Below are positions 11,540 through 39,317 of a stretch of DNA of 64,000 bases, in pieces. The translations under genes were made by a program, and so were the position numbers. Position 1 is the first letter of the stretch; each line of letters starts with the position of its first letter. The notes beneath the pieces are model-generated. The model saw only the letters and a program-made list of their open reading frames with translations. It had not been told where the DNA came from and did no database searches. Origin of the DNA: Takakia lepidozioides (Eukaryota > Plantae > Bryophyta). The stretch covers positions 57,598,001 to 57,662,000 of the forward strand of contig CM060734.1 of assembly GCA_030704615.1 (NCBI GenBank), written 5' to 3'.

Positions 11540-11656
11540 GTCCATCATCGGGGTCACGTTGTGTCGCGGCCCTTTGCCTTGAGGGCAGGGAGGTCGGGAC
11601 ACAAGAGGGGCTGCCCCTGTGGTGGGGGCAGTAGCAGCGATAGGTACAGGGGCTGA

Positions 11657-14026
11657 AGCACCCTTGAGTGCCCAAGGAAGCAAACAGATGACATTTGGGG
11701 GTATGTCCAGGCTTTCAATGTGCTGTTGCTCGAAGTCGCGGACATGGCAGAACCAGAAATGGTCTTCAACTTTGTGGCGGGACTGGCCCCGTGGGCCAGG
11801 CGGAAGTTGGAGGAGAAGCCACCCAAGACTTTGAATGAGGCAATTGAGAGGGCTGAATGTTTCTCGGATGTCCCTAGGGGTGAAAGACAAGGCCGTACGG
11901 AGCTGAACCACAAGAAGATTCGGCGGGAAGGTGACTCCTTCCGACCGGAAAAGAAGTGGGATAGGCCACGCGGCGAAAATGGCACGTGGAAATCAAAGGG
12001 AGGGCCTTCACACGTCAAGGCGGCACCCGGTGCTCCGAAAGGAAAAGCGGGTGGAGCGGCTTATGGCGGACAGAAGGCGACCTTTGATGGAGTGTGTTTC
12101 AATTGCGGGGAGCCCGGGCACATGGCCAAGAAGTGCACGAAGCCCCGGCAATTGAACATGACTCGGGCGACCACGGAGCTGTCGGAAGATACCATCAGTT
12201 GCTTGGTGGAAGCGGTGGTCGCCAGGACTTGCAAGGTAGGCAAATTTTCTTGTGAGTTGTATCAGGAAACTGGCGCCTTACGAAAAGGGAGTCAGTTATT
12301 GTTCGTGGATGGGATAATATCTGGAACTAATGTGTCGTTGTTGATGGACACAGGAGCGTCGCACTCCTTCATGACACCGGCAACGGCACAAAAGCTGGGA
12401 CTCCCGACAAGTGACGTGGGGGCCTCTATTGAGGTGCGTTCTGCCAAAGGAGAACCACAGTTGGCGACAAGGTTGGCGATTGATGTTCCTCTTCAACTGG
12501 GGAGTTGGGAGGGACGTGAGAACTTCACCATCTGCGAGATCGATGGAGTAGATCTCATTTTAGGGATGACCTTTTTGAGCAAATCCGGAGCGGTCATAGA
12601 TGGCCGCAAGAGAGTAGTCACGCTGCCATGTGGGAATGGTGGCGAGGTCTTACAAGTGTCGGAAACGCCCAAATCCGTGGGAGGGCGAATAAACCTTTTG
12701 TCAGCAAGGGAGTGGGCCGTGGAGGAGGCACACGAACCCCAGTTCTTGCTTTACATTAGAGAAGTGAAGGGAGAAGGCGATGGGGAGCCGAGCCCAGATT
12801 GGATCAAGGGGATTTTGGAAAAATACCAGGATGTGATGCCGGAGGATTTACCAAGCGGCTTGCCACCGCGAAGAGGAGTTGACCACAAGATTGAGGTGAT
12901 ACCGGGATCGGAACCGCCTGCCAAGGCGCCCTACCGGTTGAGCCACAGAGAGTTGGTCGAGCTGAAGACTCAGCTCAAGGATCTAATGTCAAAGGGGTAC
13001 ATCCGGCCGAGTAAGTCACCTTACGGAGCCCCGGTGCTATTTGCAGACAAGAAGGATGGGACGCTGCGGATGTGTGTCGATTACAGGGCTCTGAATAAGG
13101 TGACTATCAAAAACCGGTACCCTTTGCCAAGGATCGACGACCTCTTCGATCGGTTGGCAGGAGCGAAGTATTTCAGCCGGATCGACTTGCGCTCCGGCTA
13201 TCACCAAATTCGGGTGGCGGAAGGAGATGAGGAGAAGACCGCGTGCAGGACAAGGTATGGTTCATATGAGTTCTTGGTGATGCCTTTTGGGCTCACCAAT
13301 GCACCAGCAACATTTAGCACGCTGATGAATAGCCTTTTCCAGGAGTGGTTGGATGACTTTGTGATCGTGTACATCGACGACATCTTGGTGTACTCGAAAA
13401 CAAAGGAGGAGCACCTGGAGCACCTCAAAAGGGTGTTCCGAAAATTGCGAGAAGGGAAGCTGTATGCCAAAGCTTCAAAGTGCAAATTCGGGGTCACAAA
13501 AGTGGAGTTCCTAGGGCATGTGATTACACAGGATGGGATCAAAATGGATGACAGAAAGGTGAGGGCGATCTTGGACTGGGAGCCTCCGACTTCGGTCCCG
13601 GGAGTGCGATCCTTCCTAGGACTCGCCTCCTATTACCGGAAGTATGTGAGAAATTTCGCCAAGATCGCGGGGCCGCTGTCGGACCTTCTGTGTAAATCCA
13701 AAGTCTGGGTATGGAACACATTTTGTGGCCAAGCTTTTGCTGAATTGAAGCAGCGGATGACGGAAGCTCCAGTCTTGAAAATCCCGGAGTTCGATCGTCC
13801 GTTTGAGATTCATACAGATGCATCGGACTTCGCGATTGGGGGTGTTCTTATGCAAGATGGACGTCCAGTGGCTTACGAAAGTAAGAAACTAAATGAAGTG
13901 GAGCGACGGTGGCCGACGCACGAAAAAGAGATGAAGGCGGTGGTGCATTGCCTTGAGCTCTGGCGCCACTATGTTGGTTCCAACCCAGTGAAGGTGTTCA
14001 CGAACAATGTCACGGTGAAGTATTAG
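11657..14026 (+). mobile_element. Ty3/gypsy LTR-retrotransposon internal fragment (partial gag, protease, RT, partial RNase H)
   Basis: CCHC knuckle [14 protein letters not shown], protease [12 protein letters not shown] motifs [10 protein letters not shown] and VYIDDILVY, RNase [11 protein letters not shown]. It stops inside RNase H; no integrase or LTRs seen. Confidence 0.93.
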
Positions 14027-14082
14027 AATATAATTTGTTAACAGGGGTTAGTCCCCTCCGAAAGAATACATGCACGACGAGA

Positions 14083-15250
14083 ATGTCACCATGGATCTCT
14101 TTGCCCTTTTCCAGGGCTGCCAGGCTCGCGCATGCATTGCAAACACAAGCAAACATGACCCGGTCTGGCTTCACCTCTTCCAGCATCATTTGCTCATATA
14201 TCTCCAAAGCCTCCATCCTACACCCATTCTGAGCATAGCCTGTGATCATCACACTCCAGGACACCACATTTCGCTCAGCCATATTGTCGAACACTCCCTT
14301 TGCATCCTTCATGCTGCCACCTTTGGCATACATGTGCACGAGGGCAGTATTAAAAATGACATCTGGTACAATTCCCGCTTTGATGATGTCACCATGGACC
14401 TCTTTGCCCTTTTCAAGGGCTGCCACACTTGCACACGCATTGCAAACGCAAATGAACGTTACCCGGTTGGGCTTCACCCCTTCCCGAATCATTTGCTCAT
14501 ACATCTCCAAAGCCTGCATCCCACACCCATGCTGGGCATAACCTGCGATCATCGTACTCCAGGACACCACATTTCGTTCAGCCATATCGTCAAACACTTG
14601 CTTTGCATTCTTGATGCTCCCACTTTTGGCATACATGTCCACCAGGGTATGTTCAGAATGACATCTGGTATAATTCCCGCTTTGATGATGTCACCATGGA
14701 CCTCTTTGCCCTTTTCCAGCGCTGCCAGGCTTGCACATGCATTGCAAACGCAAACAAACGTGACCCGGTTGGGCTTCACCCCTTCCCGCATCATTAGCTC
14801 ATATGTTTCCAAAGCATTCCTGCCACACCCATGTTTGGTAAATCCTGCCATCATTATATTCCACGTGATTACAGCTCGTTCAGGCATTCTACTGAACACT
14901 TGGTGAGCATCCACGATGCTCCCGCACTTAACATACATGTTGACAAGGGTGCTGTGTAGAAAAACGTTTGGCTTGAATCCACTTTGGATAATGTGAGCAT
15001 GCACCTGCTTTCCAGCGTTCAAGTCTTTCATCTTGATGCACTTATGCAAGAGACAAACATAAGTATCTGAATCTGCTGCAATGCCTCCTTGGTCTAAAGT
15101 CTGTAGAGCCACTTGCAGTCGCCCTGCCTCACATAGCATCCTCACATGCCCAGAAGTGCCAGAAGAGGCATTGTGGACTCCCTCTCTTGGTCCTCTTTCA
15201 GAAGCTGTGGTCACGGTCGAGGTGCTTGAATTTATCAACTGTACAACCAT
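14083..15250 (-). pseudogene. PLS-class PPR pseudogene, 3'-truncated; close paralog of the gene at 62095-64000
   Basis: The N-terminus is nearly identical to the 62095 gene (GVHNASSGTSGHV.MLCEAGRL). There is a 1-nt frameshift at ~14650, and the repeats stop abruptly at ~14083 with no E or DYW domain. Confidence 0.88.
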
Positions 15251-16658
15251 TGCTGCTGCTTCCAGTTGACGCAGGTTTCTTATAGCTGTTCATCCACTGG
15301 GAATCATACGTAATATTGTGCATGAAATCCGGCCCTCTTGGATGAATCTGGACCCACACTCTATCCTTGATCCTTCAGCTATCCCTGCCTCTGCACCAAT
15401 CATGTACAGATCCTCACCTTGCTGCTATCAGCTGACAATGCCAGCCTAGATTTGGTCTAGCAAACACCCCAACCCTACTCATCACAAACTACTTCAATGC
15501 TGCATTCCTCCCAAGACATTAAGAATGTGCTTGGGAGAGAGAGGACGACAATTTCCAAGAAAGCTTTGCGATGCATCTTGTTGTCTGCTTCTCTCTGTAA
15601 TCTAACAGGCATTCACCTTTTGGCCTTGATTATCCCACCATTCATTGGGGCCTGAACAATATTCCTTCCAAAGCTTCTCCTCAACTCTGTTATCTGTTTT
15701 TGGATACTTTCCTGTAGCCACATGCAAGGTAACATGTCAAAATCACTCCAAGCCACCACAGGTCCACCCAACGAGCTAACTTGCACAATTCAACATTGAA
15801 AATTAGGGACGACTATGAAGAGGGCAAAATAGGCTGAAATGTGTGGAAGGTGCCCTCACCACACTGTCCTTGACTTTGTATCATGAAAGCATCTAGCTTT
15901 TCTTTCACCCACGGAGGATTCAGCCGACCATCAATCCAAAAGGACCTCTTGTGTGTGCTGCTTGTGTCTATGGTTTGGTGACCTCGGATAGGTCTGTGAG
16001 AACAACCACAATGCAGCTGAGCAGCCATAGACTTAAACATGGACAACCCTCTCAAGTACCTTGTTAACACCAGGAGAAATACCAAATCATGATACTGACT
16101 AGAAGAGCCCACAATTTCAGAAGTACATTCGTTTTCTGCTCAATTACGCAAAAGACAATTCCCAGCCTGGATCCGATGGCGCATACATACAACACATCGA
16201 CCCCAAAAAACGAAACCACCAAATGTTTCGTGTTATTACCTAATTTGAATGGCATTCCTGAAGGCGCCATAGCAACCATAGGAAAGGGACTCCGTAGTCT
16301 GCGCATTGCCAAGGAGGATGCCGATCAGCCTTCCAACTTTGTTTATCCCAAAACAACACACAAATCCCTCCCTTCCTGCTCCATCAGTTGGGATGCATGT
16401 TCAGGTTTCAACGATCGGGGTCCATCGTTGGGGCTTCTGCATTTTAAGCTACTTAGCGGATGGGTCGTGCGATTCCATCCGCCCATGTGTGTGGTGCCAC
16501 ATCCTTGGGTCCCACACGGCTCATCCGCTAACCGGATGATGCATCCCCTGCACACGGCCTAAACGACTGCGCCACCGCCAGCAATTCTTCCCAGAGAGCG
16601 AAGAGAGGAGAGAGAAGAAGGTTGCTTGGAGCACACTGAGCAATTGGCGAGGTGGGGG

Positions 16659-19600
16659 ATGGTGCTGGGCGTGCAGGAGCAACTGGGCAGCAGCATGACA
16701 GCACAGGCGCGCCTGGCGCGTATTGCGTCTCATATGCGAGCTGCAGAGGAGGTTGTGTCTGCTGCTGCCTTGTGAGCATGTGTAGAATTGATTGTGAGAG
16801 TGAAGGGTGTCGGTGGAGAGAGGGTGGATTGCGGACTGATTGTGGTCTATGCGGATGGCTACAAGGGCAGGACATGGTGGGGATCCAGAGGGAGGCGGCC
16901 CGGGCTCGTGGGGCAACGCCAGGATTCAAGGTAGCTGTGCTTGGCGCTGCGGGTGGCATTGGCCAGCCGTTATGCCTGCTGCTGAAGATGAATCCGTTGG
17001 TGTCTACCCTTCACTTGTATGATGTCTTCAACACTCCGGGCGTAACCGCTGACTTGAGCCACACCAACACCTCTACTGTGGTGCGCTTCTCTATTTCTCC
17101 AAGGCCATAGCATCATGATTACATTCATGTTGATGAAGTGCTTCATTAGATCAGTGGGAATTGCGGAGTAACAAGGGTGCGCAGTGTTTATGAAACAAGG
17201 TGCGAGGCTTCTTAGGCAACGATCAGTTGGCAGCAGCGTTGGAGGGGATGGATTTGGTTATAATTCCTGCCGGGGTTCCCAGGAAGCCGGGCATGACTCG
17301 TGACGACTTGTTCAAAATTAATGCTGGGATTGTGCGCATACTCATTGAAGGTGTTGCCAAGAACTGTCCCCGCGCAATCGTCAACATCATCAGCAACCCC
17401 GTCAACTCCACTGTGCCAATTGCAGCAGAGGTGCTAAAGCTGGCTGGCGTTTATGATCCAAAGCGGCTTTTGGGTGTCACTACTTTGGACGTTGTCCGAG
17501 CCAACACTTTCGTGGTGAGTAAACTGCGTGTTTTTGCATTGTCCTGCACCCCGAAGTGCCTGCGTCCTTCATCTACAGCACTTCACTCGTTTGATGTACG
17601 ATGAAAACCAACGTGTAGAACTAATCACAAGGGCATAGCATACCTCTATGCTGGCGGCCTGTGGGAATCCTGAGAGCATGTTATGGGTGGCATTCTTGGC
17701 AGAGCCAATGCTTCACCATTGGGCAAAGGTGGTGTCACTTGTGACCTGTGGTAAGAAACTGCGGACTATTATTGTCATCAGCCTAGGTTGAAAGACTTCA
17801 AGACACAAGCTTTCTCAAGCACATTTCCACCTGCTCTCACTCACCTGGCATTTGGTGTCTGGGTGATTTCTTCTTAGCATATTTAGGTTGAGGGCTGTAG
17901 TTTGGTAAAATTGTCTAGATGGTTACTCCCCTCACAAGGGGTAATTGAACTACAGCAGAGAGTTCACCACTATCAGATGGAGGCGACTCCTTCCAGTATC
18001 TGACGACAGTTTGACAGGGTTCCTGAGATGTGGACATGTTATAATCGGTGAGGCCAACTCTAGTGTAGACAAATGGAATTGGACTACAAGCTGTATGGAT
18101 TCCACTGGAACACTCTAGTCAAGCAACTACTAGTGTAAAGAGGCCATCAGCTACCTCTTGTCTGAACCTCTTGTCTTCTTGGGTTTTTTCCCTCAATGAG
18201 AGCCTTTTTCTCGTGTCCAAAGAACAAGCTTTCTGACATGATTTCTAGTCCAATGTACAGTTTCAGGCCCTAATGAATGCTTCTCTCTGAGTTTTGTGCA
18301 GGCGGAGGTGATTGGTGTGGATCCAAAGGTCGTTGATGTGCCAGTGGTAGGAGGGCATGCTGGCATAACTATTCTTCCAATTCTTTCTCAGGTTGGTCAG
18401 TCTTTGCTGTGTTGTCATTGTTCAGACATTTGCTTGTCTGCAGACCTTCAAGATTGTTCTTTGCTCATATTATCCTGATGACTTTATACACATGTCAACT
18501 TGTACTATATATGTATGCTGCTGGGGGAGGTGGAAGTGTTTGTGGTCCCTTTGGCCTTGTCTTACAGGGCTGACTAGTTTACATTTGATGCCAGGTAACA
18601 CCTCAATTTTCATTCACCAAAGCGGAGGTTGAATTTTTGACGAATCGGATCCAGCAGGGAGGCACAGAAGTGGTTGAGGTAGGCTGCTCTTGTTGATCAA
18701 ACTTTGACCCCCAAGACTCTAGCTGCAAGTGTATATGACAGTCTGTGCTGGTGAAAGCTGAAGTGCCTTGTTCTTGTTTGCTATGTGAGTGTACCAGGAA
18801 ATTTATCTGCGCAGTCAGAAGAGGTTTCCCTTGGTACTCCTTTTTCATTTTTCTTAGTGCTCATCAATATCACTGGGAGCCAAGACTATTTACATTTTTC
18901 AAAGTGACTTATAAGATGCCTTGACGTTTGTGCAGGCAAAGGCAGGGACAGGCTCTGCCACACTATCAATGGTGGGTACTTGACTGGCTATGTTACGTAC
19001 CGAATTGAGGACTTCTATTCCAGATGATATGATGCCCACAAATGTTTAGTTGTTGCTATAGTGATCCAGGGTGGTCTGTTTACATGTGAGAGATGGTTGC
19101 ACCTTACTGATATTGCTTTTGTTTGGGTGTCAGGCATATGCTGCTGCTAAGTTTGCAGAGTCCTGCCTTCGCGCTTTACAAGGGGAAGCTGGCATAGTGG
19201 AGTGTGCATTTGTTTCATCCCAGGTAGGACTGATTGTTGTTGGTACACTTCTTCCATTCACTCAATAGATAGTCATTTAGATCTGAACGTCATAATAAAC
19301 TGACTTTGAAACTTGTATTAGATGGTGGAAACTAACATACTACACATCTGATTTTCTCTCATGCACTAAAGGGAGAATTTTGGACCATTGTATACACACA
19401 ATCTTCCCTAATACATGTGGGTCCTTGAACAGGTGACAGAGTTACCTTTTTTCGCCACAAAGGTGAGACTTGGTCGCTCTGGAGTGGAGGAGATTTTTCC
19501 TTTGGGTCCTTTGAACAACTATGAAAGGTCAGTAATGCTGTTTGGCAATTGTTTTTGTCCAACCTTGATGCATTGTCTTATCTGGCTACACAAAGTCCAA

Positions 19601-19773
19601 CCGACATAGTTTTCCTGGGTTACTGTGAAGGTTTTGTGCAGTTTTACAACATTTCGACTGACCTCACTTGGCCATTGTTCTTTTGCAGGGAAGGGCTGGA
19701 GAAGTTGAAATTGGAACTGCGCGACAGTATTGATAAAGGCATCAGTTTTGTACAAAAATCAAAGTCTTCATAG
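16659..19773 (+). CDS. PMDH: Peroxisomal/glyoxysomal NAD-malate dehydrogenase
   Basis: Approximate exons: 16659 (or 16695)-16751, 16871-17080, 17200-17514, 18302-18391, 18595-18678, 18936-18971, 19134-19223, 19433-19528, 19689-19773, with GT-AG introns. Motifs [34 protein letters not shown] and PTS2-like RLARIASHM. Confidence 0.93.
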
Positions 19774-20158
19774 TGTGCCAAAAAAAATTATGGATGGCAG
19801 CCATGCCTGTAAAGTATGGCTATGTTCATCAGCATGTGGGGAATTTGACGTGTCGACTAGAGGGTTTGGCTAGTGGTGGATGTCAGTGTAATTTGATGGC
19901 TCAAGTTATCGTAGTCAACAGGCAGATTAAAAATTTCTGATTACAACAGCCAAGCTTTGGAATCTGATGTTTGGCTGGAAATCCTCAAATGGTCCCAGTA
20001 CTGAGGTCCATCTCAGGATTAAGATTCACTACAGATGCAAACAGTGGCATCAATGTATTGTGAATTGTGAATTGTTATGGCAGGGAGTGTTGGCTAGCAT
20101 CCCACAGCTGTAGTGTGCAGCCGAGTGTCACTCTTTTAGCGTCTCTCTCTGTTAGTCA

Positions 20159-20756
20159 GCCATGTCTGTTGCCATGAGATTGTCTGATGAAAATGAAGTT
20201 AGGCAGAAAACTTCCCTGAACTTGTTTCCAGTCAGTGACATGGGGGAGGACATCTTGGATGACCTCAGGGGTCTACCCACTCTCGGCACTAGACTGAAAT
20301 TTAAACTCAGGGCAGGAAGCCTACCTTTGAACAGCAAACAGAAGCAGAGAGGAAAGGGAGAGTGCAATTGCCCGTTGTGTGGGCAATCTGAAGACAGTAT
20401 TCATTTTCTGATACACTGTCCGGGGTTCTCTCACCAAAGAGACGCTCTCTTCAAATCTATCAAGGGAATTGTGCCTGTACCCTTGTTTACCAACTTTGAA
20501 AGTCTCCAGGCTGAGCCAAAAGCCCAGGCCCTCCTGAGGCCTAGTTTTTGGGCAAATCACACACAGCAGATTGATGCTTGTGTGAAGGGATTTCTAGAGG
20601 ATATCTGGAAAACCCGGATTTATTTTATATGAAGGTAAGTCTTACTACCAACATCAGCCCCTGACAGAGGTAGGTTCTGTCCCTTTTGTTCCCGCGCAAA
20701 CTGGGCGCGGGGTCAATGGCCACAAGGCTACGGCAAACAACGTCTTATGAGTACAA
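20159..20756 (+). mobile_element. 5'-truncated LINE, copy 1, with 15-bp target-site duplication
   Basis: C-terminal zinc finger CPLCGQSEDSIHFLIHC, then a 3'UTR ending TTATGAGTAC. TSD TCTCTCTGTTAGTCA at 20144-20158 and 20757-20771. Confidence 0.88.
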
Positions 20757-21445
20757 TCTCTCTGTTAGTCACAAGGCAGCTTGCAACAAAAGTATTCTTC
20801 ACAGCCAAGAACCTAAAGCATAGTAAGAATGCTCTGCACAACTGAACAAACGAGTAAACAAAAGCCATGTAGAAAACATCCAAGGTGACCCATCTTTTGG
20901 CTGGCACGCTTCTTAAGAGAAGGATAAGGATATCACAAGTTTCTCTCACAGTCATCTCTGCGTTTTCTGTTGTCGCACAACTTAATCCCCCAAACGTGTC
21001 ATTCTCTATCCAATTTATGCAAGCCACACTCTTTGCATGTGTAGACAAGATTAATTTGCTGCTGAATACCTAGTTTCCAAGTGTTTCTGCATTCACCGCT
21101 TACAGTTCAAGCTCTAACTTAAGTGATTAGCGGGAGTTTGATACCCCATCACATCGCTTGTCACGTTAAGTGCAGGGTGCAGATGCTGCATAAGACAAGT
21201 CTCCTCCGTTGCCATGGCGGATCTGATGCCCACTTCCTCCCCCTTGTCCATGCAGGGAGGGAGGTCCATTCTCAGCTCTAGTGAATGGAAGTGTGTCATT
21301 TGTGAATATGTTTCCTCTGGAGACAGAGGGACCGTTTGCTGTGACTCAAGGGACCTGAGTCGGGTCCAGTGGAGTCTTTCAGGTGCAGTAGAGCGGATAT
21401 AACCAGGTTGAGGATAGCTTCAAACCTGATCACTGGAAAGCAACA

Positions 21446-24400
21446 GTGCATATTGCGAAAATCCGAGGAGGAGCAGCCATGGTAAAAGTCCGAGAGGGAG
21501 CAGCCATGGCAGCGAGTACGATAGGTATGGCATTGTCCCGCAGCACCTCGGGCTGCCCTCACAAGCCTCCCCGATCCTACTCTTGCAAGTCCGGGGCTTT
21601 CCCAAGAGCTTCACAAAGGTGTCGAGTGTATACTCTGTCTGGGAGCTCTGTGCATTTTCCGAACCCCACTGCATTAGGATATGCTTCAAACAGTCTTAAT
21701 GCAATTGCAGAGCAGTGGCGATTCGTAGAGCAGGGCCACGTTCATGCACATGGGCATAAGGAAGGAGGCCACACATGTAAATGTCCAGAAAGCCAAATTG
21801 CAGACGCTGAGAACCTTTGTGACGAGTGTTTTGTAGACCCCAATCAATTGTGGGACAATACAGGCAGGAAGATGCATCCTAGAGAAGCAGATTTCAATCA
21901 CAAGAGTACCAATGAGGGACCACGGATTGATAGGTCTCAGAAACCTGCTCGGGTGGAGGCTGAATTGGAGAAACTCGATTCAGCTAGGGCCACATGTCCA
22001 AAAATTGTAACAACAGACGAGGAGAAGATTTGGAAGAAAGTTTTTTCAAACCCCTGTCAACTGTGGGAAAATCAAGGCAGAATATATCTTAAAGGACAAG
22101 AGATCAAGCACAATGGTTCCAACAACGGGCTATGGATTCTTGGCAACAAGAAACCTCTATGGGTAGGTGGTCAATTGAAAGCAGTGTCAGCAAAGTTGTG
22201 CGACTCAGGCACCCACGCCATAACGACCTCTTTTGAAAGATTTGGGGATGTGAGGACACTATGGAAGGCAGGACAACTGAAGGAGACTTGGCAGATTTTG
22301 AAGGAAGGAGGCGTTGTGGCAGACTCCAAAACTTATGTCTCTCTCTTGCAGCAGTGCATCAAAGTGAAAGGCCTAGCAGAGGGAAAGCAAGTGCATGCCC
22401 ATATTATCCAAAGTGGATTCAAACCAGACATCTTTCTACACAACACCCTCATCAACATGCATGCCAAGTGCGGGAGCATTGTGGATGCACGCCTAGTGTT
22501 TGACAAAATGCCTGAAAGAGGTTTGATCACGTGGAATATAATGATAGCAGGATATGCCAAGCACGGATACTGTAGGGAGGCCTTTGAAACCTATAAGCAA
22601 ATGATGCAGGAAGGGGTGAAGCCCAACAAGGTTACGTTTGCTTCCATATGCAATGCATGTGCCAGCCTGGATTCCCTGGAAAAGGGCAAGGAGGTCCATG
22701 CTCACATCATGAAAACTGGAACTGTACCAGATGTCATTCTGGACACTGCACTCATTAACATGTATGCCAAATGTGGGAGCATCAAGGATGCAAAAGGAGT
22801 GTTCGACAATATGGCGAGACGAGATGTGGTGTCATGGAATGCAATGATCACAGGGTATGCCCAGCATGGGTGTGGGATGGAGGCTTTAGAGACATATGAG
22901 CAAATGAAGCGGGAAGGGGTGGCCCCCAACCTGGTCACATTCATTTGTGTTCTCAAGGCCTGTGGCTTGGAAAAGGGGAAAGCGGTCCATGCTGACATCA
23001 TAAAAGCTGGAATTGTGCCAAATATCGTCTTAGACAATACCCTCGTGGATATGTATGCGAAATGTGGGAGCATCATGGATGCAAAGGTAGTGTTCGACAA
23101 TATGGCTGAACGAAATGTGGTGTCATGGAATGCGATGATCGGAGGATATGCCCAGCATGGGTGTGGGACGGAGGCCTTGGAGACCTATGAACAAATGATT
23201 CTGGAAGGGTTTAAGCCCAACCAGGTCACTTTCATTTGTGTTTGCAATGCGTGTGCTAGCCTTGCAGACCTGGAAAAGGCCAAAGAGGTCCATGCTGACA
23301 TTACGAAAACTGGAATTGTACCAGATATCGTTCTTCACAATTCCCTCATGAACATGTATGCCAAAAGTGGGAGCATTGATGATGCAAAGGTATTGTTTGA
23401 CAGTATAGCTAAACGAGATGTGGTTTCATGGAATGCTATGATTGCAGGATATGCCCAACATGGGTATGGGAAGGAGGCTTTGGAGGCATATGAGCAAATG
23501 TTACAGGAACGGGTCAAGCCCAACCAGGTCACGTTCGTTTGCATTTGCATTGCATGTGCGAGCTTAGCAGTCCTGCAGAAGTGCAAGGATGTCCACACGG
23601 ACATTATGAAAGCTGGAATTGTGCCAAATATTATCTTGGACACTACCCTTGTGGACATGTATGCCAAATGCGGGAGTGTCAAGGATGCAAGGAGACTGTT
23701 TGACAATATGGCTGAACGAGATGTGGTGTCCTGGAATGCAATGATCGCAGGATATGCCCAGCACGGGTGTGGGATGGAGGCTTTGGAGACCTACGAACAA
23801 ATGCTTCGTGAAGAGGTGGAGCCCAACCAGGCCACGTTTATCTCAGTTTGCAATGCATGTGCCAGCATGGCAGCCCTACAAAAGGGCAAAGAGGTTCATG
23901 CCAGCATAGTGAGAGCTGGAACTGTACCAAATATCAGTCTCGACAATACCCTGGTGGACATGTATGCCAAATGTGGGAGCATCCAGGATGCAAAGGGAGT
24001 CTTTGACAAAATGGCTGAACGAGATGTGGTCTCATGGAATGCAATGATCGCAGGATATGCCCAGCATGGCTGTCGTAGGGAGGCCCTGAAAGTGTTTGAA
24101 GGAATGCAAAAGGAAGGCTGGAAGCCGGACCATATCACCTTTGTATGTGTTCTCTCTGCATGTAGCCATGGGGGGCTAGTGGATGAAGGCAAACACTATT
24201 TTGATTCTCTGAGTCAAGATCATGGCCTGACCCCTACAGGTGAGCACTTTGGCTGCATCGTAGACCTTCTCGGTCGTGCAGGAAGACTGGATGAGGCAGA
24301 GGACTTTATCCACACAATGCCAATCAAATCAAACGTTAAGGTGTGGAAAGCCTTGCTTGGTGCGTGTAGGGTTCATGGCAATGTGGAGGTGGCAGAACGT

Positions 24401-24949
24401 GCGGCAAAATCTATCCTGCAGTGGGATCGACAGGAGGCTGCGACTTATGTGTTATTATCAAACATTTATGCCGCAGCTGGCAGGTGGGATGATACTGCAA
24501 AGGTGAGAAGAATGATGAAGGTCAGAGGTGTGAGAAAGGAGCCAGGTCGCTGCTGCATTGAGGTCGGCAATAGAGTCCATACATTTGTAGTGGATGACAA
24601 ATTGCATCCACACATTGAGAAAATCCATGTTGAGCTGAGGAGATTGTCTGGGCAGATGAAAGAGGCAGGGTACATTCCCGACATGCGCTTTGTATTGCAT
24701 GATATGGAGGAGGAACAAAAGAAATTTTCTCTTTGCAACCACAGTGAGAAGCTGGCCATTGCTTTTGGCCTGATCAGCACGGCCCCTGGGACACCTCTCC
24801 GTATTATCAAGAATCTCCGGGTGTGTGGTGACTGCCACACGGCTTCCAAGTTCATCTCAAAGATAGTTGGGCGAACAATGGTTGTACGGGACGCAAACCG
24901 GTTTCACCACTTCCAAGATGGGGTTTGTTCTTGTGGGGAGTACTGGTGA
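21446..24949 (+). CDS. PLS-class PPR protein with intact DYW-type deaminase ending EYW; probable organellar C-to-U editing factor
   Basis: 1167-aa intronless ORF with a Ser/Arg-rich N-terminus, P-L-S triplets, RKEPGRCCIEV, HSEKLA, CGDCH and CSCGEYW. The true start is probably an ATG near 21479 or 21506. Confidence 0.93.
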   Translation: MHIAKIRGGAAMVKVREGAAMAASTIGMALSRSTSGCPHKPPRSYSCKSGAFPRASQRCRVYTLSGSSVHFPNPTALGYASNSLNAIAEQWRFVEQGHVHAHGHKEGGHTCKCPESQIADAENLCDECFVDPNQLWDNTGRKMHPREADFNHKSTNEGPRIDRSQKPARVEAELEKLDSARATCPKIVTTDEEKIWKKVFSNPCQLWENQGRIYLKGQEIKHNGSNNGLWILGNKKPLWVGGQLKAVSAKLCDSGTHAITTSFERFGDVRTLWKAGQLKETWQILKEGGVVADSKTYVSLLQQCIKVKGLAEGKQVHAHIIQSGFKPDIFLHNTLINMHAKCGSIVDARLVFDKMPERGLITWNIMIAGYAKHGYCREAFETYKQMMQEGVKPNKVTFASICNACASLDSLEKGKEVHAHIMKTGTVPDVILDTALINMYAKCGSIKDAKGVFDNMARRDVVSWNAMITGYAQHGCGMEALETYEQMKREGVAPNLVTFICVLKACGLEKGKAVHADIIKAGIVPNIVLDNTLVDMYAKCGSIMDAKVVFDNMAERNVVSWNAMIGGYAQHGCGTEALETYEQMILEGFKPNQVTFICVCNACASLADLEKAKEVHADITKTGIVPDIVLHNSLMNMYAKSGSIDDAKVLFDSIAKRDVVSWNAMIAGYAQHGYGKEALEAYEQMLQERVKPNQVTFVCICIACASLAVLQKCKDVHTDIMKAGIVPNIILDTTLVDMYAKCGSVKDARRLFDNMAERDVVSWNAMIAGYAQHGCGMEALETYEQMLREEVEPNQATFISVCNACASMAALQKGKEVHASIVRAGTVPNISLDNTLVDMYAKCGSIQDAKGVFDKMAERDVVSWNAMIAGYAQHGCRREALKVFEGMQKEGWKPDHITFVCVLSACSHGGLVDEGKHYFDSLSQDHGLTPTGEHFGCIVDLLGRAGRLDEAEDFIHTMPIKSNVKVWKALLGACRVHGNVEVAERAAKSILQWDRQEAATYVLLSNIYAAAGRWDDTAKVRRMMKVRGVRKEPGRCCIEVGNRVHTFVVDDKLHPHIEKIHVELRRLSGQMKEAGYIPDMRFVLHDMEEEQKKFSLCNHSEKLAIAFGLISTAPGTPLRIIKNLRVCGDCHTASKFISKIVGRTMVVRDANRFHHFQDGVCSCGEYW

Positions 24950-25317
24950 AAGGATGTTTTCTTCAAGGTGTGACTGTCTTTCTTCCTTCGTTAGATCTCT
25001 GGAGCTGCTAGGTTCAGTCACAATTACTTGGGAATGTCGGCTTTGATGTACTGTTGACGGTATATCCTCTGGCATATCAACTGTCCAAGAGCCAATTGTG
25101 GGGTCTACTCACCACAAGGTGGGATCTCTACCGGAAATTGCATTTTGGTCTTGTGTAATTAATGCCAATGTGCTTACAGGAGGTAAATGTTGATGTGCAA
25201 AGTGGTCTAGATCATGTTTGGAAACAAGGTGGATGCCTGCATTGCTTCTTTAGGTCCAGATGTGGATGTCGTTGGACTGCACAGTTGTCGCGAAGAGAGA
25301 GTTGCGAGAAAGATAAC

Positions 25318-25484
25318 GTACTCACGAGACGTTGTTTGCTGTAGCCTTGTGGCCATAGACCCCGTGCCCAAACAGTGGGTGCAGCACTGGGACTTCCCGG
25401 GAGATCACCTGTCCCAATACTATTCCGGACCAAAGGTGCTTCACTTCAGAGTTCTGATTGGATCTTGTGGGTATGACCACACCA
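25318..25484 (-). mobile_element. 5S rRNA-derived retroposon (candidate SINE3-type) with LINE-derived 3' tail
   Basis: Minus strand 25484-25376 reads TGGTGTGGTCATACC..GATCCAATCAGAACTCTGAAGTGAAGCACCTTTGGTCCGGAATAGTATTGGGACAGGTGATCTCCCGGGAAGTCCCAGTGCTGCACCCA, i.e. 5S rRNA with a ~10-nt deletion. Positions 25370-25318 match the LINE tail at 20702-20754 (48/53). Confidence 0.85.
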
Positions 25485-26872
25485 CACAATGAGAGAGAGA
25501 ATGTACTCATAGCCACACAACGAGAAAGAGAGAGAGTATGTGTGTTACATAGCATGTCAACACTAGACAAGGAAATACTGAACACAATGTGTTGTGTTTA
25601 CATCTTTTTAACGACATCAGACATCCTAATTGAGGCACCATTAAACTGCCCCTAGCCAGATCTGCCTTCATATCTCCCTTTACATATTCTTACTGGAAAT
25701 TTAGGTGTTCTTATGGCAATCAAATACACACTAGGTAGGCCCTTCTCACAATTGAGTTTACCTCCTCACTTTGATAACCTAAGAAGCAGGAAGTGCACGA
25801 GTGTCTCCTTAAAGGCAACTCCTTTCCAGCTCATAGATCCTTCAAACCCATTCAGAGAAAAACAGCAAGAGTTTGTGTTCAAAACCAACACATACAAACA
25901 GATTTGAGGTTGGAGAGAGCTCAAAGCCTCAGTCCCTTAGTCTCTTGCCCTTATTATCATTCCCTGCAACAAATGAAGGTGAAGTGGCCTCACCTGGATC
26001 CATCACAGCCAACTAACAAACCAACAGGTGAGTGAGCCTTGTGTAACCCCAAGCTTAAACCACTTCACATTTGTTATCGATGTCATCCGCTTCCTGTGTA
26101 GTTTTTGGGGTGAATCCAAGGATGTTCCTTTAAAACTACCTGCTCCAGCTGAGGCTTGGATTATGTGGTACCATCTCAAGACTTGATAACAGAGGTAGTT
26201 TGAAGGTTTCAATGTCTACAAATGCTACAAATAGAGTCTGACATCAAATCAACTTCAAGGAAGTTCGTCCCTTGATTGGCTGGAGAGCGGTCTTAGACAT
26301 TGGTAATTCAATGAGGCGCTCTAGGAAGACAACCAAGGGTGGGACTTCAACTTGAAAGTTTCGGTAATAGGTTCTTCTGTTAGCAGACCAACATGCCCTC
26401 CCTCTGGAGCATGGGCTGAAATAGGTGCATGTTGTTAGCTGAGTTGTATACCTACTGCTGGCAGAAATGGCCGGAAGGACAGTTTTACCTGTCCTCTCTT
26501 TGTTAGTATGACCTGCTTTGATTTGGCATAAGTAACCAATTCCCAGGGAGGTTGACCATGTTCTCCATGGTTGTTCAAGTAACTTAATTGGCCTCCGATA
26601 TGAGATTGACTGTGTTGACTGACCCATTGTTCCCCAATGCATGTTAGATAATTGATTTGACTTGTGAAATCTCCATGTTCTCCTTGATAAAAGGTGAGTA
26701 TGCAACTGGCCATGTTGACTGACCCATTGTTCTAGGGCATGCTAGACAGAGCATACAACTGCCCCCAAGTGGTAGGGGGTTGGGTAAACGGCAGCCGCGT
26801 TACCCCGGTTATTAGCCCTAAGACCGTGTCAACTCTTGAAAGTGTCCACCTTCCAAACGAAAGGGGGTGAAG

Positions 26873-27183
26873 TTTTTTCTTTTCTTTTTTGGTGAAGGGA
26901 CACCATAAGTGTCGGTAAGAGGGTAAGAGGAAGGTGGTCCGCTGGTTACCATTCAGAGATCACGCTCCAAAGGAGCTGCAGGGAATGGCCCGCGTAGACA
27001 TATTCTAAAGAGGGAGAGGCCCCAAGCTCTCCAACTAAATCCAATGCACTACCTTACCTGAAGCAAAGTGCTTCAGGTCAAAACAAACAAAGACACGAGG
27101 TCATAAGGCCAGCATTTTGTCACGCAGGCATTTGGGTACTCCCATATCAAGTCCACCCAATGGCATTGGGCTTCCTAGAGGGC
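26873..27183 (-). mobile_element. Possible A-tailed retroposed element, unclassified
   Basis: The minus strand ends TCCCTTCACC plus an A-rich tail, like the SINE tail at ~28610. It has a perfect 10-bp hairpin ACCTGAAGCA-AAG-TGCTTCAGGT at ~27056-27078 and abuts (GA)n. Confidence 0.3.
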
Positions 27184-28263
27184 AGAGAGAGAGAGAGATC
27201 TTGCATTTCCTCTACTGACAGGGTGTCGGCTGAGTGTCTGTGGAGTGGGTAATCTTCAGATGTTCTCCAATTCCAATATCATGGGACCATACACATCTAA
27301 TTCGGTTCATATCAGTCTCTCTCTTTCTTTTTCCCATACTGCCTGTCCCCCATGCTGCTTTAGTCTTAAATTTTCATCTTTTCATTCCCAAGTGCACAAG
27401 CGAGACACCCTTGCATAATTATGATGACTAGGTTTCAGTCAAGGAATCATGAACATGTCAAATCAGTCAAAAGTTGTATGTGTTGTATTTTGAGTTGATG
27501 GCCTGTGGCTATACTGCAGATGAATCATGGATGGCGATTGTGTACATTCAGTACAGGTTTGGTCCTGCTGTGACCACCTATAGAAAGCCCCTGGTAATGC
27601 ATCTCCTCATACGTCATTTCCAGGTATGACACTGCAGAGAGGTTTGGCAATGCTTAGATTAAATCTTCTGTCCACAGATCTCATGCTCAATTGGTCTAAG
27701 GTGTAGGATACATGCTTAACAAATTGTTCTTTTGTGGATTCTGCTCGGTGTATGTTGCCCTCATCCATTACCAACTTCATGAGATTGGAACTAACTTGGA
27801 ATTTATGCAGTTTGTCTTTTGAGAAGGATTGGTGGTGTCTTGCATGACCACATTTTATCTGATGTATTGCGTTAAGGTGGTTCCTATACTTCCGAAGCAA
27901 ATGACAGTGATGACAGAGGAGCATGCCGGTATGTGCTTCCACCTCTTTTTCCCTCCTGTTCTCAAATATGATGAAAAAAGTACAGAAAACTTGTGACTAA
28001 TTGGAAGCAGAGATTGTTCAAGCGTGATGATTATCCATCACTTTTTACAAATCAAAGGATCCTTTCAGGAATATCTGTGATCATGTCAAATACTACCCCA
28101 AAGGTGCTTGTACCACTACGCGATATAATATGCAGTATACCTATGCCATCATAAATTGTTACAATTGTAGATGCAGTATTTAGACTATTATTCCAAGGTT
28201 ATTTTCTCTCGGTTCTTTCATTCCATTTCGGGATTTTCATTTGCTTTCAGAAAAAGAAACGAC

Positions 28264-33300: not shown

Positions 33301-35109
33301 TCACCTGCCAGCTGCAGCATACATGTTTGATAGGACCATGTAACCTGCAGCATTCTGTGGATCCAACTGGAGAGAATATTTTACTGCGCGTTCTGCTACC
33401 TCCAAATTTCCATGAATCCTGCATGCACCAAGCAGGGTCCCCCACACCCCAACATCTGGTTTGACTGGCATTTTGTTAATGAACTCCTCTGCCTCATACA
33501 GTCGCCCTGCACGGCCAAGAAGGTCAACCATGCAGCCAAAATGCTCCACCACAGGAGTGAGGCCATGATCTCGACTCATGGAATCAAAGTAATGACAACC
33601 TTCATCCACGAGGCCCACACGGCTACATGCAGAAAGAAGAGACATAAAAGTACTACTATCAGGCTTCAATCCTTCCTGCATCATTTTTCCAAATAGTTGG
33701 AGGGCCTCCCTACCACTCCCATGTTGAGCATATGCTGCGATCATGGCATTCCAAGAAACCGTGTCTCTTTTTGTCATGTCGTCAAACACGTGGCGTGCAT
33801 CCTTCACACTCCCACATTTGGCATACATGTCAACAAGGGCAGTCTCCAGATTCATATATGACCCAATTCCAGAGTCGATGATATCTGAATGGACCTCTTT
33901 GCCCTTTTCAAGGGCTCCTAGGCTGGAGCACGCGTTGAGAACGCAAATGAATGTGATTCTGTCTGGTATGACCTGTTTCCATCGCATTTGCTCATAGATC
34001 TTCAGAGCCTCCCAACCACACCCATGCTGACCATATCCTGTGATCATGGCGCTCCATGAGACAATATTTCGTTTTGCCATATTGTCAAATACTTGGCGCG
34101 CATCCTTCACACTCCCACATTTGGCGTACATGTCAACAAGGGCGGTCTGCAGAATGATATCTGGGGAGATTCCACTTTTGCTGATGTAAGTATGAAGCTC
34201 CTTGCCCTTCTCCAGAGCTCCTAGGCTTGCACACACAGTGACAATGCATGTGAACGTGATCCTATTGGGCTTCACCCCTTCCTGTTGCATTAGCTCATAG
34301 ATCTCAAACGCATCCTTACTACACCCATGCTGGGCATATCCAGCAATCATGGCATTCCATGAGACCACATTTCGTTTTGCCATATTGTCAAACACTAGAC
34401 ATGCATCCTTCATGCTCCCACATTTGGCATACATGTCAACCAGGGCAGTCTCCAGAATGACATCAGGAGCAATTCCAGCTTTCATAATGTCAGCATGCAC
34501 TTCTATGCCCTTTTCCAGGGCTCCTACACTGGCACATGCATTAAGAATGCAAAGGTACGTCACCCTGTCCGGGGCCACCCCTTCCCGTTGCATTTTCTCA
34601 TGGATCTTGAATGCCTCCCTACCACACCCATGCTTGGCATATCCTCCGATCATAATATTCCATGTAAACATATCTCGTTCAGACATTTTCTCAAACACTT
34701 GACGGGCATCCACAAGACTCCCGCACTTCGCATACATTTTGACAATTGTGTTGAGTAAAAAAATATTTGGCTCCAATCCACTTTGGATAATGTGGGCATG
34801 CACCAGCTTACCCTGTGCTAGATCTTGCATGTTGATGCACACCTGCAAAAGAGAGCTGTAAATACTGGTCTCTGGCCAAATGCCTTGTTGGTTCAGCATG
34901 TGTAGTCCCTCCTTTGGTCGTCCCTCTTTACACAATATCCTTGCATATGTGGAGAAAGAAGACTTCTCGTTGACTCCCTCTTTTCGCCCTCTGTCAATGG
35001 CAGTGGTCACAGTGGACATGCTTTCCCTGATACCAGTATATTGCGCAACGAGCAACTGTCTCTGACCCAACCCAAGCGTCCTGCATGACTCAAAACTTGC
35101 AGTTACCAC
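33301..35109 (-). CDS. PLS-class PPR protein truncated in the E domain, no DYW; possibly a pseudogene
   Basis: 602-aa ORF ending MYAAAGR-stop. An out-of-frame E+ remnant (RGV*KEAGYGCIEVDNQVHRF) follows down to ~33180. Closest in-window paralog is the 1704 gene. Confidence 0.85.
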   Translation of the reverse strand: MVTASFESCRTLGLGQRQLLVAQYTGIRESMSTVTTAIDRGRKEGVNEKSSFSTYARILCKEGRPKEGLHMLNQQGIWPETSIYSSLLQVCINMQDLAQGKLVHAHIIQSGLEPNIFLLNTIVKMYAKCGSLVDARQVFEKMSERDMFTWNIMIGGYAKHGCGREAFKIHEKMQREGVAPDRVTYLCILNACASVGALEKGIEVHADIMKAGIAPDVILETALVDMYAKCGSMKDACLVFDNMAKRNVVSWNAMIAGYAQHGCSKDAFEIYELMQQEGVKPNRITFTCIVTVCASLGALEKGKELHTYISKSGISPDIILQTALVDMYAKCGSVKDARQVFDNMAKRNIVSWSAMITGYGQHGCGWEALKIYEQMRWKQVIPDRITFICVLNACSSLGALEKGKEVHSDIIDSGIGSYMNLETALVDMYAKCGSVKDARHVFDDMTKRDTVSWNAMIAAYAQHGSGREALQLFGKMMQEGLKPDSSTFMSLLSACSRVGLVDEGCHYFDSMSRDHGLTPVVEHFGCMVDLLGRAGRLYEAEEFINKMPVKPDVGVWGTLLGACRIHGNLEVAERAVKYSLQLDPQNAAGYMVLSNMYAAAGR

Positions 35110-35860: not shown

Positions 35861-36392
35861 TTTTTTTTTCCCAGACCGCGTGGGTGGGTCCAAAAGGACC
35901 CTTATTATTTTTTTGTTTTTTTGCAAAGCCCTTTTCAGGGGTCGCGGGAGCAGGAGGTGGTGTTCAAGCACCCCTCCTGCCCCTTGTAGCCAAGGTCATC
36001 TTTCGTACAGGGAGCGAGGGACCCCTTGTGAGGCTCTCCCGAACCTGTAGAGATGCCGCCATTTCCAACTCATCCGTTGCAACGTTAAATGATGCCAACG
36101 TCTGCGAGGCATTCGTCAGAGCCACGTCCATGGACGCCAACACATCGGAAGCCCGCTTCAGTAGGGCATCAAACCGTGCAAACAACTCCAACGCCCCTCT
36201 CAATGCAACATCAAGCACGTCCTTGTGAGCAACACTTGAGGCCATTTCCAAAGAGCGCAAGAGATTAATGGGGCCACCAAGGCCTCCCCTCTTTCTATAT
36301 GGATGGATGGATGCTGGATGGATGGCCGGTTACTGTTGTTGTGCCTAGAACGACACATCACCAGAACAAATATGGCAAATCAATTGGAACAC
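35861..36392 (-). repeat. Unclassified dispersed repeat, copy A (carries a 93-aa ORF, two hairpins and (GGAT)n)
   Basis: Core is nearly identical to 40580-41149; I saw one substitution. Hairpin GGGTCC-AAAA-GGACCC at 35886-35901. ORF 36245-35964. Confidence 0.85.
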
Positions 36393-36717: not shown

Positions 36718-39317
36718 AGACATCCAGGACCTTTTGGGATCACTGGCGGTGACCATGGTGGAAGCTTTACCAACCCTTCATGAACTGAATGATATGAGTG
36801 CGACCAAAATTCTTGAAAGAGAAGTGATGAGTGCTATGTGGCAATATATCTTGACATACAGACTAGCTGACGAAGAGAAGCTTGATGAAACCCCCATCTG
36901 GTAAAGGTGGCCTTGCTGGCTCTCACGTCCCTGCTTCCTGTTCTCACTCTTTTGTGTCACTCTCTTGCTCTGACTGGTGATAATTCCCAAACTCCCTGCT
37001 TTTATGGGATGCTTGAGGACTGAGCCATAAAACAATTCTACAGTCTTGTTAAGTACATCTTCCATTTTCCTTCTAAGACCCTGAATGTTTTAACTGACTC
37101 TCTCGATATTCTTATCCAGGGGTATGTTTGGTTCATCGGGTTATCCAAGTACTTGTAATTTCAAGGACTTTTTTTAGTTACTAAGGTATGGTTTGAGAGG
37201 GTTTTGGTCAGGATGGCCATTCAAAGAGTCTTTACAGTCACATTTGGTTGTCAGCTCATGAGCTGACCCTGCTTGGAAACCTGATGTCTTGGCGAGGGTT
37301 TGGTTCTGTTGTACATTTGCCAGATTAGGCAAGAAGTGGGGTTCTGAATAAGCAGCAATTATGACAGGTATGTAATGGATGAACTGGGGTCCGCACTTCG
37401 GCACAGCGATGCACCCAACTTCCGGGTTGCTCCCTTCATGTTCTTACCTGATGGCACACTTCAGTCTGCAATCAGGTTCTCTGTGTCCGTCTCCCTCTCT
37501 TCTTTAAACATCTCAAATGGCACTCCCTCTTAAGCTCTGATGTTTGGTGCTGCAAAAGTCCTTGATCTTGCAGAGGAAGGTAGATGTTGGTGTCTAGCGA
37601 AAAACAGGGGACACTTTGATCCTTGGTAGAATGTACTCATAAGAATGTGCCGTAGCCTTGTGGCCATTGACCCCGCACCCAGTTTGAGCGGAACTCAAAG
37701 GGACAGAAACTACCTTTGTCAGGGGCTGACGAAGGTAGTATCCTGGGCTTTTGGCTCAGCCAAAGCTGGTAAACAGAGGTACAGGAACAATTCCCTTGAT
37801 GGAATTGAAGAGGGTGTCTCTCTGGTGAGAGTACCCAGGACGATGAATCTGGAAGTGGATATTGTCTTCAGCTTGCCCGCAAACGGGCACTCCAAGCTAT
37901 GCTTTGCTCTACGATGCGTCTGTTTGCTGTTCAATGGTAGGCTACCCGCCCTGAGTTTGAATTTCAGTCCAACGCGAAGAGTGAGTAAACCCTTGAGGTC
38001 ATCCATGATGGCCTCACTCATGTCACATACTGGAAACAGGTTCAGGGAAATTATCTGCCCAACTTCATTTTCATCAGACAATTTCCTGGCAACAGACATG
38101 GCTTTGGAAACTTCAGTCTCTAAGTCAGATTAATCCAGCAGGGTCATGGCTTGTGGACTTAGATTCAGATCCTATAAATCTCCTCTACCCTCTTCCGCCA
38201 GGACTCAGCTTGTTTGACAGGGTGCTCCTGCTTCCAAGATATAGAGTCGATTAACTTAGGATATCTGGTATGAGTCGTACGTTGCAGCTGACCCCACCAT
38301 CTGACCTTGAATTCATTGTGTTAGGAGCTTAAGGGAGGAATGCCAAACTCACCCCGAACAGCCACATTAGCTGTTTTGAAGCATGCTGACATGCACTCCA
38401 CACAGCAGATGCGGACTCCAGGGTAGGCCTAATAGCGGGGCAAAGCATGGTTTTTTTTATTTCAGAGTTGATCTCTCTGAAGTGGAAAAATTTACGAAAT
38501 TTTTGATCCTTGGTAGAAAGTGAGAGAGAGCACTCGGCCCATAGCAGCTGGTAATATCGTGAGCTGACTTTGCTTTGGAATATCTAATTATGGCAGATTC
38601 TTTCTGCAGCTATTCATTGCTATGGCCTATCTGGGACCTAGAAAAAGGGTGTAGTCAGTGTGGTTTGTGCATCTCTATCTCAGTTGTGTCGTATTACTTT
38701 GTGCCTAAGCATTCGGGGTGCCAGACTGGCTCCAACCAACCTACAACATGGAAACACAGCTACCCGCTCTAATGGGCGCGTATTTGGAAAGAGAGGAGAT
38801 GGGACAAGACAATCTCTGGATTGTGAAACCGTGGAACATGGCACACACCATTGACAGTACTGTTGACAGGGAGCTTACCAGCACTGGTGCGACTGGTTAT
38901 TGGCCAAAAGTATATTGAGCAGCCTGCCCTCTACCAGGGGCGCAAGTTTTATCTGCGCTACGTCGTTTTGTTGAGGAGTGTGCAACCCTTGGAGATATTC
39001 CTCTATGATGTTTTCTGGGTACCAGTTGACCTCCCTCTGGCCTTTGATTCAGATGTGACTAAGCTACCTCCAATGTTGTTGCCAGTCCAAGATTTCAAAA
39101 CCACAGCATGAACAAATTCTGTCATGCTTTAGACGAGAGTAACACTTGGGACTTAAAGACCTTGTCAAAACCCCCTGGCTCAAATGAAGGCAAAGAAGGC
39201 AACGTGGGTCGAGAGTATCAATAACAAGAAGAGGGTAGTGGTGCAGGCTTGATTTTCAAACAACCACTACTGAAGAGAGCAGCCTTGCAGACTATGACAC
39301 TCATTTCACAGTTATGG
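36718..39317 (+). pseudogene. TTLL12: Tubulin-tyrosine ligase-like 12 (TTLL12) gene fragments
   Basis: Spliceable pieces AMWQYILTYRLADEEKLDETPIW | YVMDELGSALRHSDAPNFRVAPFMF | SYSLLWP ... NLWIVKPWNMA ... QKYIEQP..GRKFYLRYVVLLRS | DYDTHFTVM. Large internal deletions and a frameshift at ~38865. Confidence 0.8.
37632..38501 (-). mobile_element. 5'-truncated LINE, copy 2 (same family as 20159), with 17-bp TSD, inside a TTLL12 intron
   Basis: Shares LKFKLRAGSLPLNSKQ and the 3'UTR ending TTATGAGTACAT; also IRPTLESASAVW and NVAVRGEFGIPPL. TSD TTTGATCCTTGGTAGAA at 37615-37631 and 38502-38518. Confidence 0.88.

Follow-up and report, generated by a model that had tools for sequence, protein, structure and literature searches.

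Takakia lepidozioides (Bryophyta) harbours, at 25318-25484 on the minus strand of the stretch analysed here, an old and dead retrocopy that was made by a LINE and joins a 5S rRNA sequence to a LINE tail in the architecture of a SINE3 element. The stretch, hereafter called the window, comprises 64,000 nucleotides of the forward strand (contig CM060734.1 of assembly GCA_030704615.1, positions 57,598,001 to 57,662,000). The design is the one that the original prediction had proposed: a full 5S head that lies in sense and is joined, by a short linker, to the last 53 nt of a LINE residing in the same window. The architecture of the element, its partner LINE and the mode of insertion, the point at which the LINE homology breaks off, the low copy number and the decay are established by the analysis. 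That we are dealing with a SINE3-type retroposon copy, composed of a 5S head and a LINE recognition tail and belonging to a propagating family, has in our judgement an even chance. All described plant SINEs that we know of have tRNA-derived heads.

Head, linker and tail

The head is 109 nt long (25376-25484, minus strand) and extends from 5S +1 to the 5S 3' end. It matches the Rfam covariance model 5S_rRNA (RF00001) over model positions 1-120 with 42.8 bits and an E value of 1.6e-05, the gathering score of this model being 38 bits. The presumed 5S copy of about 109 nt, starting at +1 on the minus strand, is thus real. It is the sole Rfam match of the 64-kb window and also the sole one that a permissive threshold yields in 19500-27500. 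About 11 model positions are missing, which corresponds to an internal deletion of about 10 nt. Its position can be looked at in two ways. The Rfam alignment places it in loop C. Logan contigs of the organism, in which the region is represented by four DNA runs from a single sample and by two runs that are probably RNA, tell a different story. When two of the DNA runs and the two RNA runs were aligned on 25100-25700 at 80% likeness, the organism's 5S-like contigs ran gap-free from 25373-25382 to 25469, and all of them ended there. Since they cross loop C without a gap and stop at 25469, the deletion likelier lies just 3' of 5S nt 15. Judged from these alignments, the missing 10 nt or so were more likely lost between 25470 and 25469, upstream of box A, rather than in loop C.

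The region of box A, IE and box C is decayed but still recognisable, with IE and box C being best conserved, and the head thus appears to keep the internal Pol III promoter region. Compared with the organism's 5S-like contigs it shows 8-15 differences per 70-97 nt, roughly 11%. A run of four T is absent from the element by direct reading, which implies that a transcript started from the 5S promoter would read through into the tail. The head is followed by TTT only, and no Pol III terminator is found within 230 nt beyond the element.

Between head and tail a spacer of about 5 nt had been noticed; direct reading of the minus strand identifies it as CTGTT at 25371-25375. It is either untemplated or a junction sequence. 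The 3' end of the 5S sequence shares a CCCA microhomology with the LINE sequence just upstream of the breakpoint.

The tail (25318-25370, minus strand) corresponds to the last 53 nt of the LINE 3' UTR and ends with GAGTAC, as seen in alignments and contigs. The claimed identity of 48/53 with the LINE end at 20702-20754 is reproduced by the alignment (90.6%, E 1.5e-15), and the same tail, which had been reported for a second LINE near 37632, is indeed found there as a third copy at 37628-37740. A pattern made from the 32-nt core of the tail hits two sites only, 25318-25370 and 20702-20754, with 0.00 expected by chance. The small stem-loop postulated for the tail (GGCC/ACAA/GGCU) fared less uniformly. 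The hairpin UGGCC/ACAA/GGCUA is present in the minimum-energy fold of all three tails; its stability, however, does not exceed that of shuffled sequences (z from -0.5 to +0.2 for the three tails). As the hairpin sequence is invariant in the three tails, there is no covariation to count. Folding of the whole 5S/tail element likewise gave nothing better than shuffles. In total, the element measures 167 nt, or about 180 nt if the terminal TC-rich run is included, and it has no coding function of its own.

The partner LINE and the target site

The LINE that provided the tail is represented in the window by two copies. Copy A lies on the plus strand at 20144-20771 including its target site duplications (TSDs), as defined by alignment, open reading frame and repeats; it is truncated at its 5' end and about 600 nt long (20158-20756). 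It contains the end of ORF2 (20162-20632) with a Cys-His knuckle of the type C-x2-C-x7-H-x4-C and a 3' UTR of 122 nt with the terminus GAGTACAA. A direct repeat of 14-15 nt, TCTCTCTGTTAGTC(A), which begins with a TC run, bounds the copy at 20144-20157 and 20757-20770 and indicates insertion by target-primed reverse transcription. Copy B (37628-38103, minus strand) shares 81-85% identity with copy A; its reading frame is broken, it has suffered an internal deletion, and it has the same 3' tail.

In a search of 1.8 billion representative proteins the reading frame of copy A matched the extreme C-termini of proteins of 990-1480 amino acids that carry Exo_endo_phos (APE) and RVT_1 domains. The reverse transcriptase of these relatives resembles both the R2 and the L1 (LINE-1) enzymes in PDB. 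The APE domain, however, tells us that the partner LINE is not R2-like. By the sequence criteria just mentioned, it is a genuine APE-type LINE with a Cys-His C-terminus of ORF2. At two loci of another species that encode relatives of the LINE reading frame (L001 and L002), the tail is absent.

Copies A and B share their first nucleotide (20158 and 38103, respectively; AGCCATG...) despite differing flanks. This common start lies 4-5 nt before the ATG that opens the terminal reading frame of 156 amino acids. Either a 3' segment of about 600 nt was copied as a unit, or there is a preferred point of 5' truncation.

The genomic contigs complement this picture. Some 3000 contigs of DNA run X1 align to the tail, and the largest class of their loose ends begins right behind 25370. 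Reverse-complementing the consensus of these ends gives the LINE sequence ahead of the tail in copy A. It follows that the LINE homology stops exactly at 25370, and also that almost every tail in the genome is part of a LINE and not of a 5S fusion. The loose ends before 25318 and 25327 reveal the terminus of the LINE family as TATGAGTAC-ATT-(CT)n, i.e., GAGTAC-ATT-(CT)n, a simple repeat without poly(A). Contig joints that jump back from 25370 to 25318 represent tails in tandem. Thousands of tails with a break at 25370, their shared terminus and their tandems, taken together, mark the tail as a unit that is used by the LINE machinery. The family leaves very many extremely short 3' fragments as well as tail-to-tail tandems, and copy A sits at a TC-run target. 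These observations suggest priming assisted by microsatellites and a preference of the LINE for its own termini.

The 5' edge of the element is disturbed by a secondary insertion (25482-25520, minus strand), which was recognised by reading and by 18 nt of 94% identity to the end of copy A. A fragment of 23 nt (25490-25512) adjoins the head upstream. It consists of the last 10 nt of the LINE, ATT, (CT)5 and an A, and is flanked by the 8-nt direct repeat TTGTGTGG at 25513-25520 and 25482-25489. In our view, this is a LINE copy with an extreme 5' truncation that was inserted later, at the edge of the head.

Once these 23 nt are removed, the 9-mer TCTTTCTCG (25521-25529, minus strand), a 9-nt word shared by both ends and the candidate 5' copy of a TSD, sits 5 nt before the 5S start. 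A second TCTTTCTCG is found 4 nt past the terminal GAGTAC: the stretch 25305-25317 on the minus strand comprises GTTA, a decayed LINE terminus, and then the candidate 3' copy of the TSD (25305-25313). The word is TC-rich and of low complexity, and a shared word of 9 nt was reached in 29/2000 shuffles. The TCTTTCTCG pair is a probable TSD around the whole unit. The boundary of the element mirrors that of LINE copy A: GAGTAC, 2-4 nt and then a repeat led by TC. The likeness suggests that the RNA paired via its (CU)n end with a TC-rich target and that this pairing served as the primer.

Copy number, transcripts and neighbourhood

The head is covered by about 6-12 contigs per DNA run, some of which are true 5S rDNA. 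A few collapsed 5S rDNA contigs would also give the high summed depth that is seen on the head. An abundant SINE the element is not; for that, its head is too low in copy number.

Single positions of the head are informative in this respect. Four reference alleles of DNA run X3 (25410, 25411, 25459 and 25466) show a depth of about 73, which equals that of the contig of this locus, and one locus therefore carries these alleles. At 25417, 25429 and 25437 the reference alleles reach about 126, the sum of this locus and one contig of about 53, and at 25404 about 242, which amounts to about three copies. The deletion point is crossed in run X1 by three contigs whose depths add up to 165, single-copy sequence having a depth of about 70. 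These X1 contigs and the X3 depth at 25404 are compatible with a few siblings that share the diagnostic changes.

The only other junction-bearing contig shown stems from run X1 (record 3; 263 nt, 24 mismatches and 12 gap letters). It spans 25318-25592, i.e., tail, head and upstream flank, and appears to share the flanks of the element. Another X1 contig (record 1) spans 25121-25347 with 22 mismatches. Taken together, the two contigs, one with the upstream and the other with the downstream flank, resemble a duplicated version of the entire segment, diverged by about 9-10%, and not a transposed copy. Close relatives among the contigs thus number a handful at best, and for none of them can an unrelated locus be demonstrated.

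Searches outside the genome were negative. The 87-aa frame that runs through the element had no candidate sibling for its 5S and tail part in the protein collection. A metagenome scan for the 5S box C motif followed by the tail core at a distance of 20-50 nt found nothing, and neither did a scan for the tail core alone. An empty paralogous site was not seen in the 64-kb window, because the PPR gene copies are homologous only as far as the stop codon. The upstream flank itself (25541-25700) is a mid-copy repeat with about 12-18 contigs per DNA run at 80-90% likeness and a summed depth 20-70x the single-copy level; it is also present in the RNA runs.

The runs X5 and X7, which come from different studies, are probable poly(A)-type RNA runs. 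Each contains one contig on the element, with 0 and 1 mismatch, respectively, that matches only from 25343 to 25430/25435 and then continues into 139 and 400 nt of unlike sequence. The depth of both runs is zero on 25100-25288, which fits RNA rather than DNA. On the plus strand a pyrimidine-rich run is followed by an acceptor AG at 25343-25344, and a donor GT lies at 25436-25437 (AAG|GT). The simplest reading of these RNA contigs and splice signals is that splicing of a plus-strand transcript includes 25345-25435 as a 91-nt exon, antisense to the element and made up of the antisense tail, the linker and the 3' part of the 5S sequence. This candidate exon possibly belongs to the 3' UTR of the DYW-PPR gene ending at 24949, beyond which position 24968 could serve as a 3' UTR donor. 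The junction-spanning RNA contigs, then, fit a spliced antisense exon and not a Pol III transcript, and a short transcript of the sense strand was not seen in these poly(A)-type runs.

The neighbourhood is rich in DYW-type PPR genes and fragments, which are clustered at 1704-4124 (+), 14070-15250, 21446-24949 (+), 33301-35109 (-) and 62095-63990 (-). Four DYW-type PPR genes are counted in the 64 kb. Genes and fragments occur in both orientations, are mutually 70-80% identical and show an internal periodicity of 303 nt (101 aa, the P-L-S triplet). The DYW domain of the gene at 1704-4124 is truncated and covers 52/93 profile positions. For the neighbouring PPR protein an exact look-up yielded no entry, and the best homologues in a protein homology search, from Diphasiastrum and others, were 52-54% identical. 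Between the PPR genes lie Ty3/Gypsy-type polyprotein reading frames (10454-14026, +) with zinc knuckle, aspartyl protease, reverse transcriptase and RNase H. A reading frame at 16652-17110 (+) contains the N-terminal NAD-binding domain of lactate/malate dehydrogenase (E 7.7e-13) and is probably one MDH exon just upstream of LINE copy A. Two direct repeats of 300 nt (35862-36161 and 40580-40879), 99% identical and 4.7 kb apart, may represent the two LTRs of a young LTR element with LINE copy B inside it.

Origin of the element and known systems

How could such an element arise? We infer an origin by template switching, transcription by Pol III and propagation as a family. The reverse transcriptase of the APE-type LINE would take the last 53 nt of the LINE RNA, with the small hairpin and the end GAGTAC-ATT-(TC)n, as its first template for target-primed reverse transcription. 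It would then continue onto a 5S RNA by template switching, and the product would be a 5S head, CTGTT and the LINE tail in one orientation. A unit of this kind would keep the internal Pol III promoter of 5S without the 5S terminator, and its transcript would run into the tail. The LINE machinery might recognise the transcribed tail and mobilise the unit again, in the fashion of SINE3. The copy described here would be a member of a small lineage and would have inserted long ago into a TC-rich target, a probable TSD of 9 nt being the result. After insertion, it would have decayed by about 10% and lost about 10 nt of its head. It was probably duplicated together with its flanks, its 5' edge seems to have been struck by the 23-nt LINE-end insertion, and part of it now seems to be used as an antisense exon. 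That the locus is, in this precise sense, a copy of one 5S-headed SINE mobilised via the hairpin and the (TC)n tail of a stringent-type LINE is a tentative view, to which we would assign slightly less than an even chance.

The same architecture could result from one single insertion. The reverse transcriptase would have jumped from the LINE RNA, 53 nt from its end, onto cellular 5S rRNA, and the product would never have re-inserted; the element would then be the plant counterpart of the mammalian U6/L1 and 5S/L1 chimeric retrocopies. Known chimeras are built in precisely this way, with a complete small RNA copied in sense, the 3' end of a LINE behind it and some additional nucleotides where the two meet, and such chimeras are described as unique events that do not propagate themselves (bioRxiv 10.1101/2025.02.02.635956). 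In this genome the LINE is extremely abundant, with numerous tail tandems and very short fragments of the tail; the head has few copies; and the sole other contig with the junction appears to share the flanks. All this fits a non-propagating chimera. The mammalian 5S/L1 chimeras, however, are mostly antisense and truncated, whereas the 5S sequence described here is sense and full-length. Moreover, the breakpoint retains just the terminal segment that bears the hairpin, as selection for mobilisation would. On balance, the single event is quite conceivable, if somewhat doubtful.

To assume two unrelated events, i.e., a solitary 5S pseudogene and a later insertion of a 53-nt, 5'-truncated LINE end directly downstream, is less attractive. 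Of course, very short 5'-truncated LINE ends are common in the genome, often beside other elements, and one of them, of 23 nt, even sits at the other edge of the same 5S head. Yet a solitary full-length 5S copy outside the array requires retroposition anyway, and the LINE fragment would need to have landed within 5 nt of the exact 5S 3' end and in the same orientation. Also, no TSD was detected around the 53-nt tail by itself; the 9-mer encloses head and tail jointly. We consider this sequence of events improbable. That the element might be a functional or orphon 5S gene, or else derive from a Cassandra-like TRIM as a solo LTR or a fragment, is still harder to defend and deserves hardly any credence. 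Cassandra has to be mentioned as the known 5S-bearing transposable element of land plants (PMC10886601, PMC10946416). It is excluded here by the single 5S match in 64 kb and by a head that is followed by a LINE tail instead of an LTR arrangement. An LTR context, which would have pointed to a Cassandra-like element, was looked for, and no LTR-type direct repeats were found within 2 kb on either side. A working 5S gene is excluded because the sequence is solitary, lacks about 10 nt, barely exceeds the Rfam threshold, deviates by about 11% from the abundant 5S and has no terminator. A tRNA-derived head was also rejected, as there is no tRNA in the 64-kb window; nor was a tRNA SINE with the LINE tail seen there.

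A propagating SINE3-type element, the reading outlined above, has to be compared with what is known elsewhere. SINE3 elements are 5S-derived SINEs, the zebrafish SINE3 among them (Kapitonov and Jurka 2003, as cited in PMC5786205 and PMC10946416). Like these, the element in Takakia has a 5S head that starts at +1 and includes the promoter region, has its tail from a partner LINE, is short and does not code for protein. SINE3 families, in contrast, are known from animals only, have many copies of constant structure and usually possess a body between head and tail; here, only 5 nt separate head and tail, copies are very few, and a land plant is the host. In animals, SINE3 families arose independently several times (PMC10886601), and template switching during LINE insertion is an accepted route by which elements of this type are born (PMC3272025; bioRxiv 10.1101/2025.02.02.635956).

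HaSE3 of Helicoverpa armigera is a case in point. It too combines a 5S head with a LINE 3' end that terminates in a simple repeat without poly(A), is low in copy number when compared with the tRNA SINEs of its genome, and is proposed to have originated from a template switch onto 5S rRNA (PMC3272025). It differs in that its body and tail are common with a tRNA-derived SINE and in that its partner is an RTE element (PMC3272025). The U6/L1 chimeric retrocopies (Buzdin et al. 2003, as cited in PMC3272025) and their 5S/L1 relatives likewise place a small RNA 5' of a truncated LINE 3' end within one insertion, by template switching; they differ by variable LINE breakpoints, poly(A) ends and the absence of propagation (bioRxiv 10.1101/2025.02.02.635956). 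The partner LINE in Takakia, as opposed to the RTE of HaSE3, is characterised by APE, reverse transcriptase and a C-terminal Cys-His motif.

For the tail, the eel provides a parallel, since the UnaL2 reverse transcriptase reportedly recognises a shared tail of hairpin and repeat. The 'stringent' LINE-SINE pair UnaSINE1/UnaL2 (Kajikawa and Okada 2002, as cited in PMC5786205) resembles ours in the common 3' tail of about 50-60 nt, with a small hairpin, a short tandem repeat and no poly(A). UnaSINE1 differs by its tRNA head and its eel host, and recognition of the tail by the plant LINE is putative.

Cassandra, a TRIM (Kalendar et al. 2008, as described in PMC10886601), shares with the element the status of a plant retroelement that bears a 5S-derived Pol III promoter sequence. 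In Cassandra, however, the 5S sequence resides in two LTRs, and PBS, PPT and 5-bp TSDs are present; these are absent at 25318-25484. A review of 2024 states that, as far as its authors are aware, plants have no SINEs of 5S origin and points to Cassandra instead (PMC10946416). The supposition that a plant 5S SINE had not been described agrees with this review, and we found none in the searchable literature. The 5S segment of Cassandra has been proposed to stem from a SINE3 insertion (PMC10946416, PMC10886601).

A plant case would extend a known kind of element, SINE3, to another kingdom; the kind itself would not be new. If independent chimeras were at work instead, LINE template switching onto 5S rRNA would be documented in plants, which is of narrower interest. 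Verification of a 5S SINE and its partner LINE in a land plant outside the seed plants, by contrast, would close the gap noted by the review of 2024 and demonstrate that the 5S route to the birth of SINEs exists in plants. The simple pair of head-linker-tail element and LINE would then also offer a test case for the choice of templates by a plant LINE that ends with a hairpin and (TC)n. If the SINE3 reading is true, Takakia would possess the first SINE3 family of a land plant and, at the same time, a living example of the type of element that is proposed to have seeded the 5S segment in the LTRs of Cassandra.
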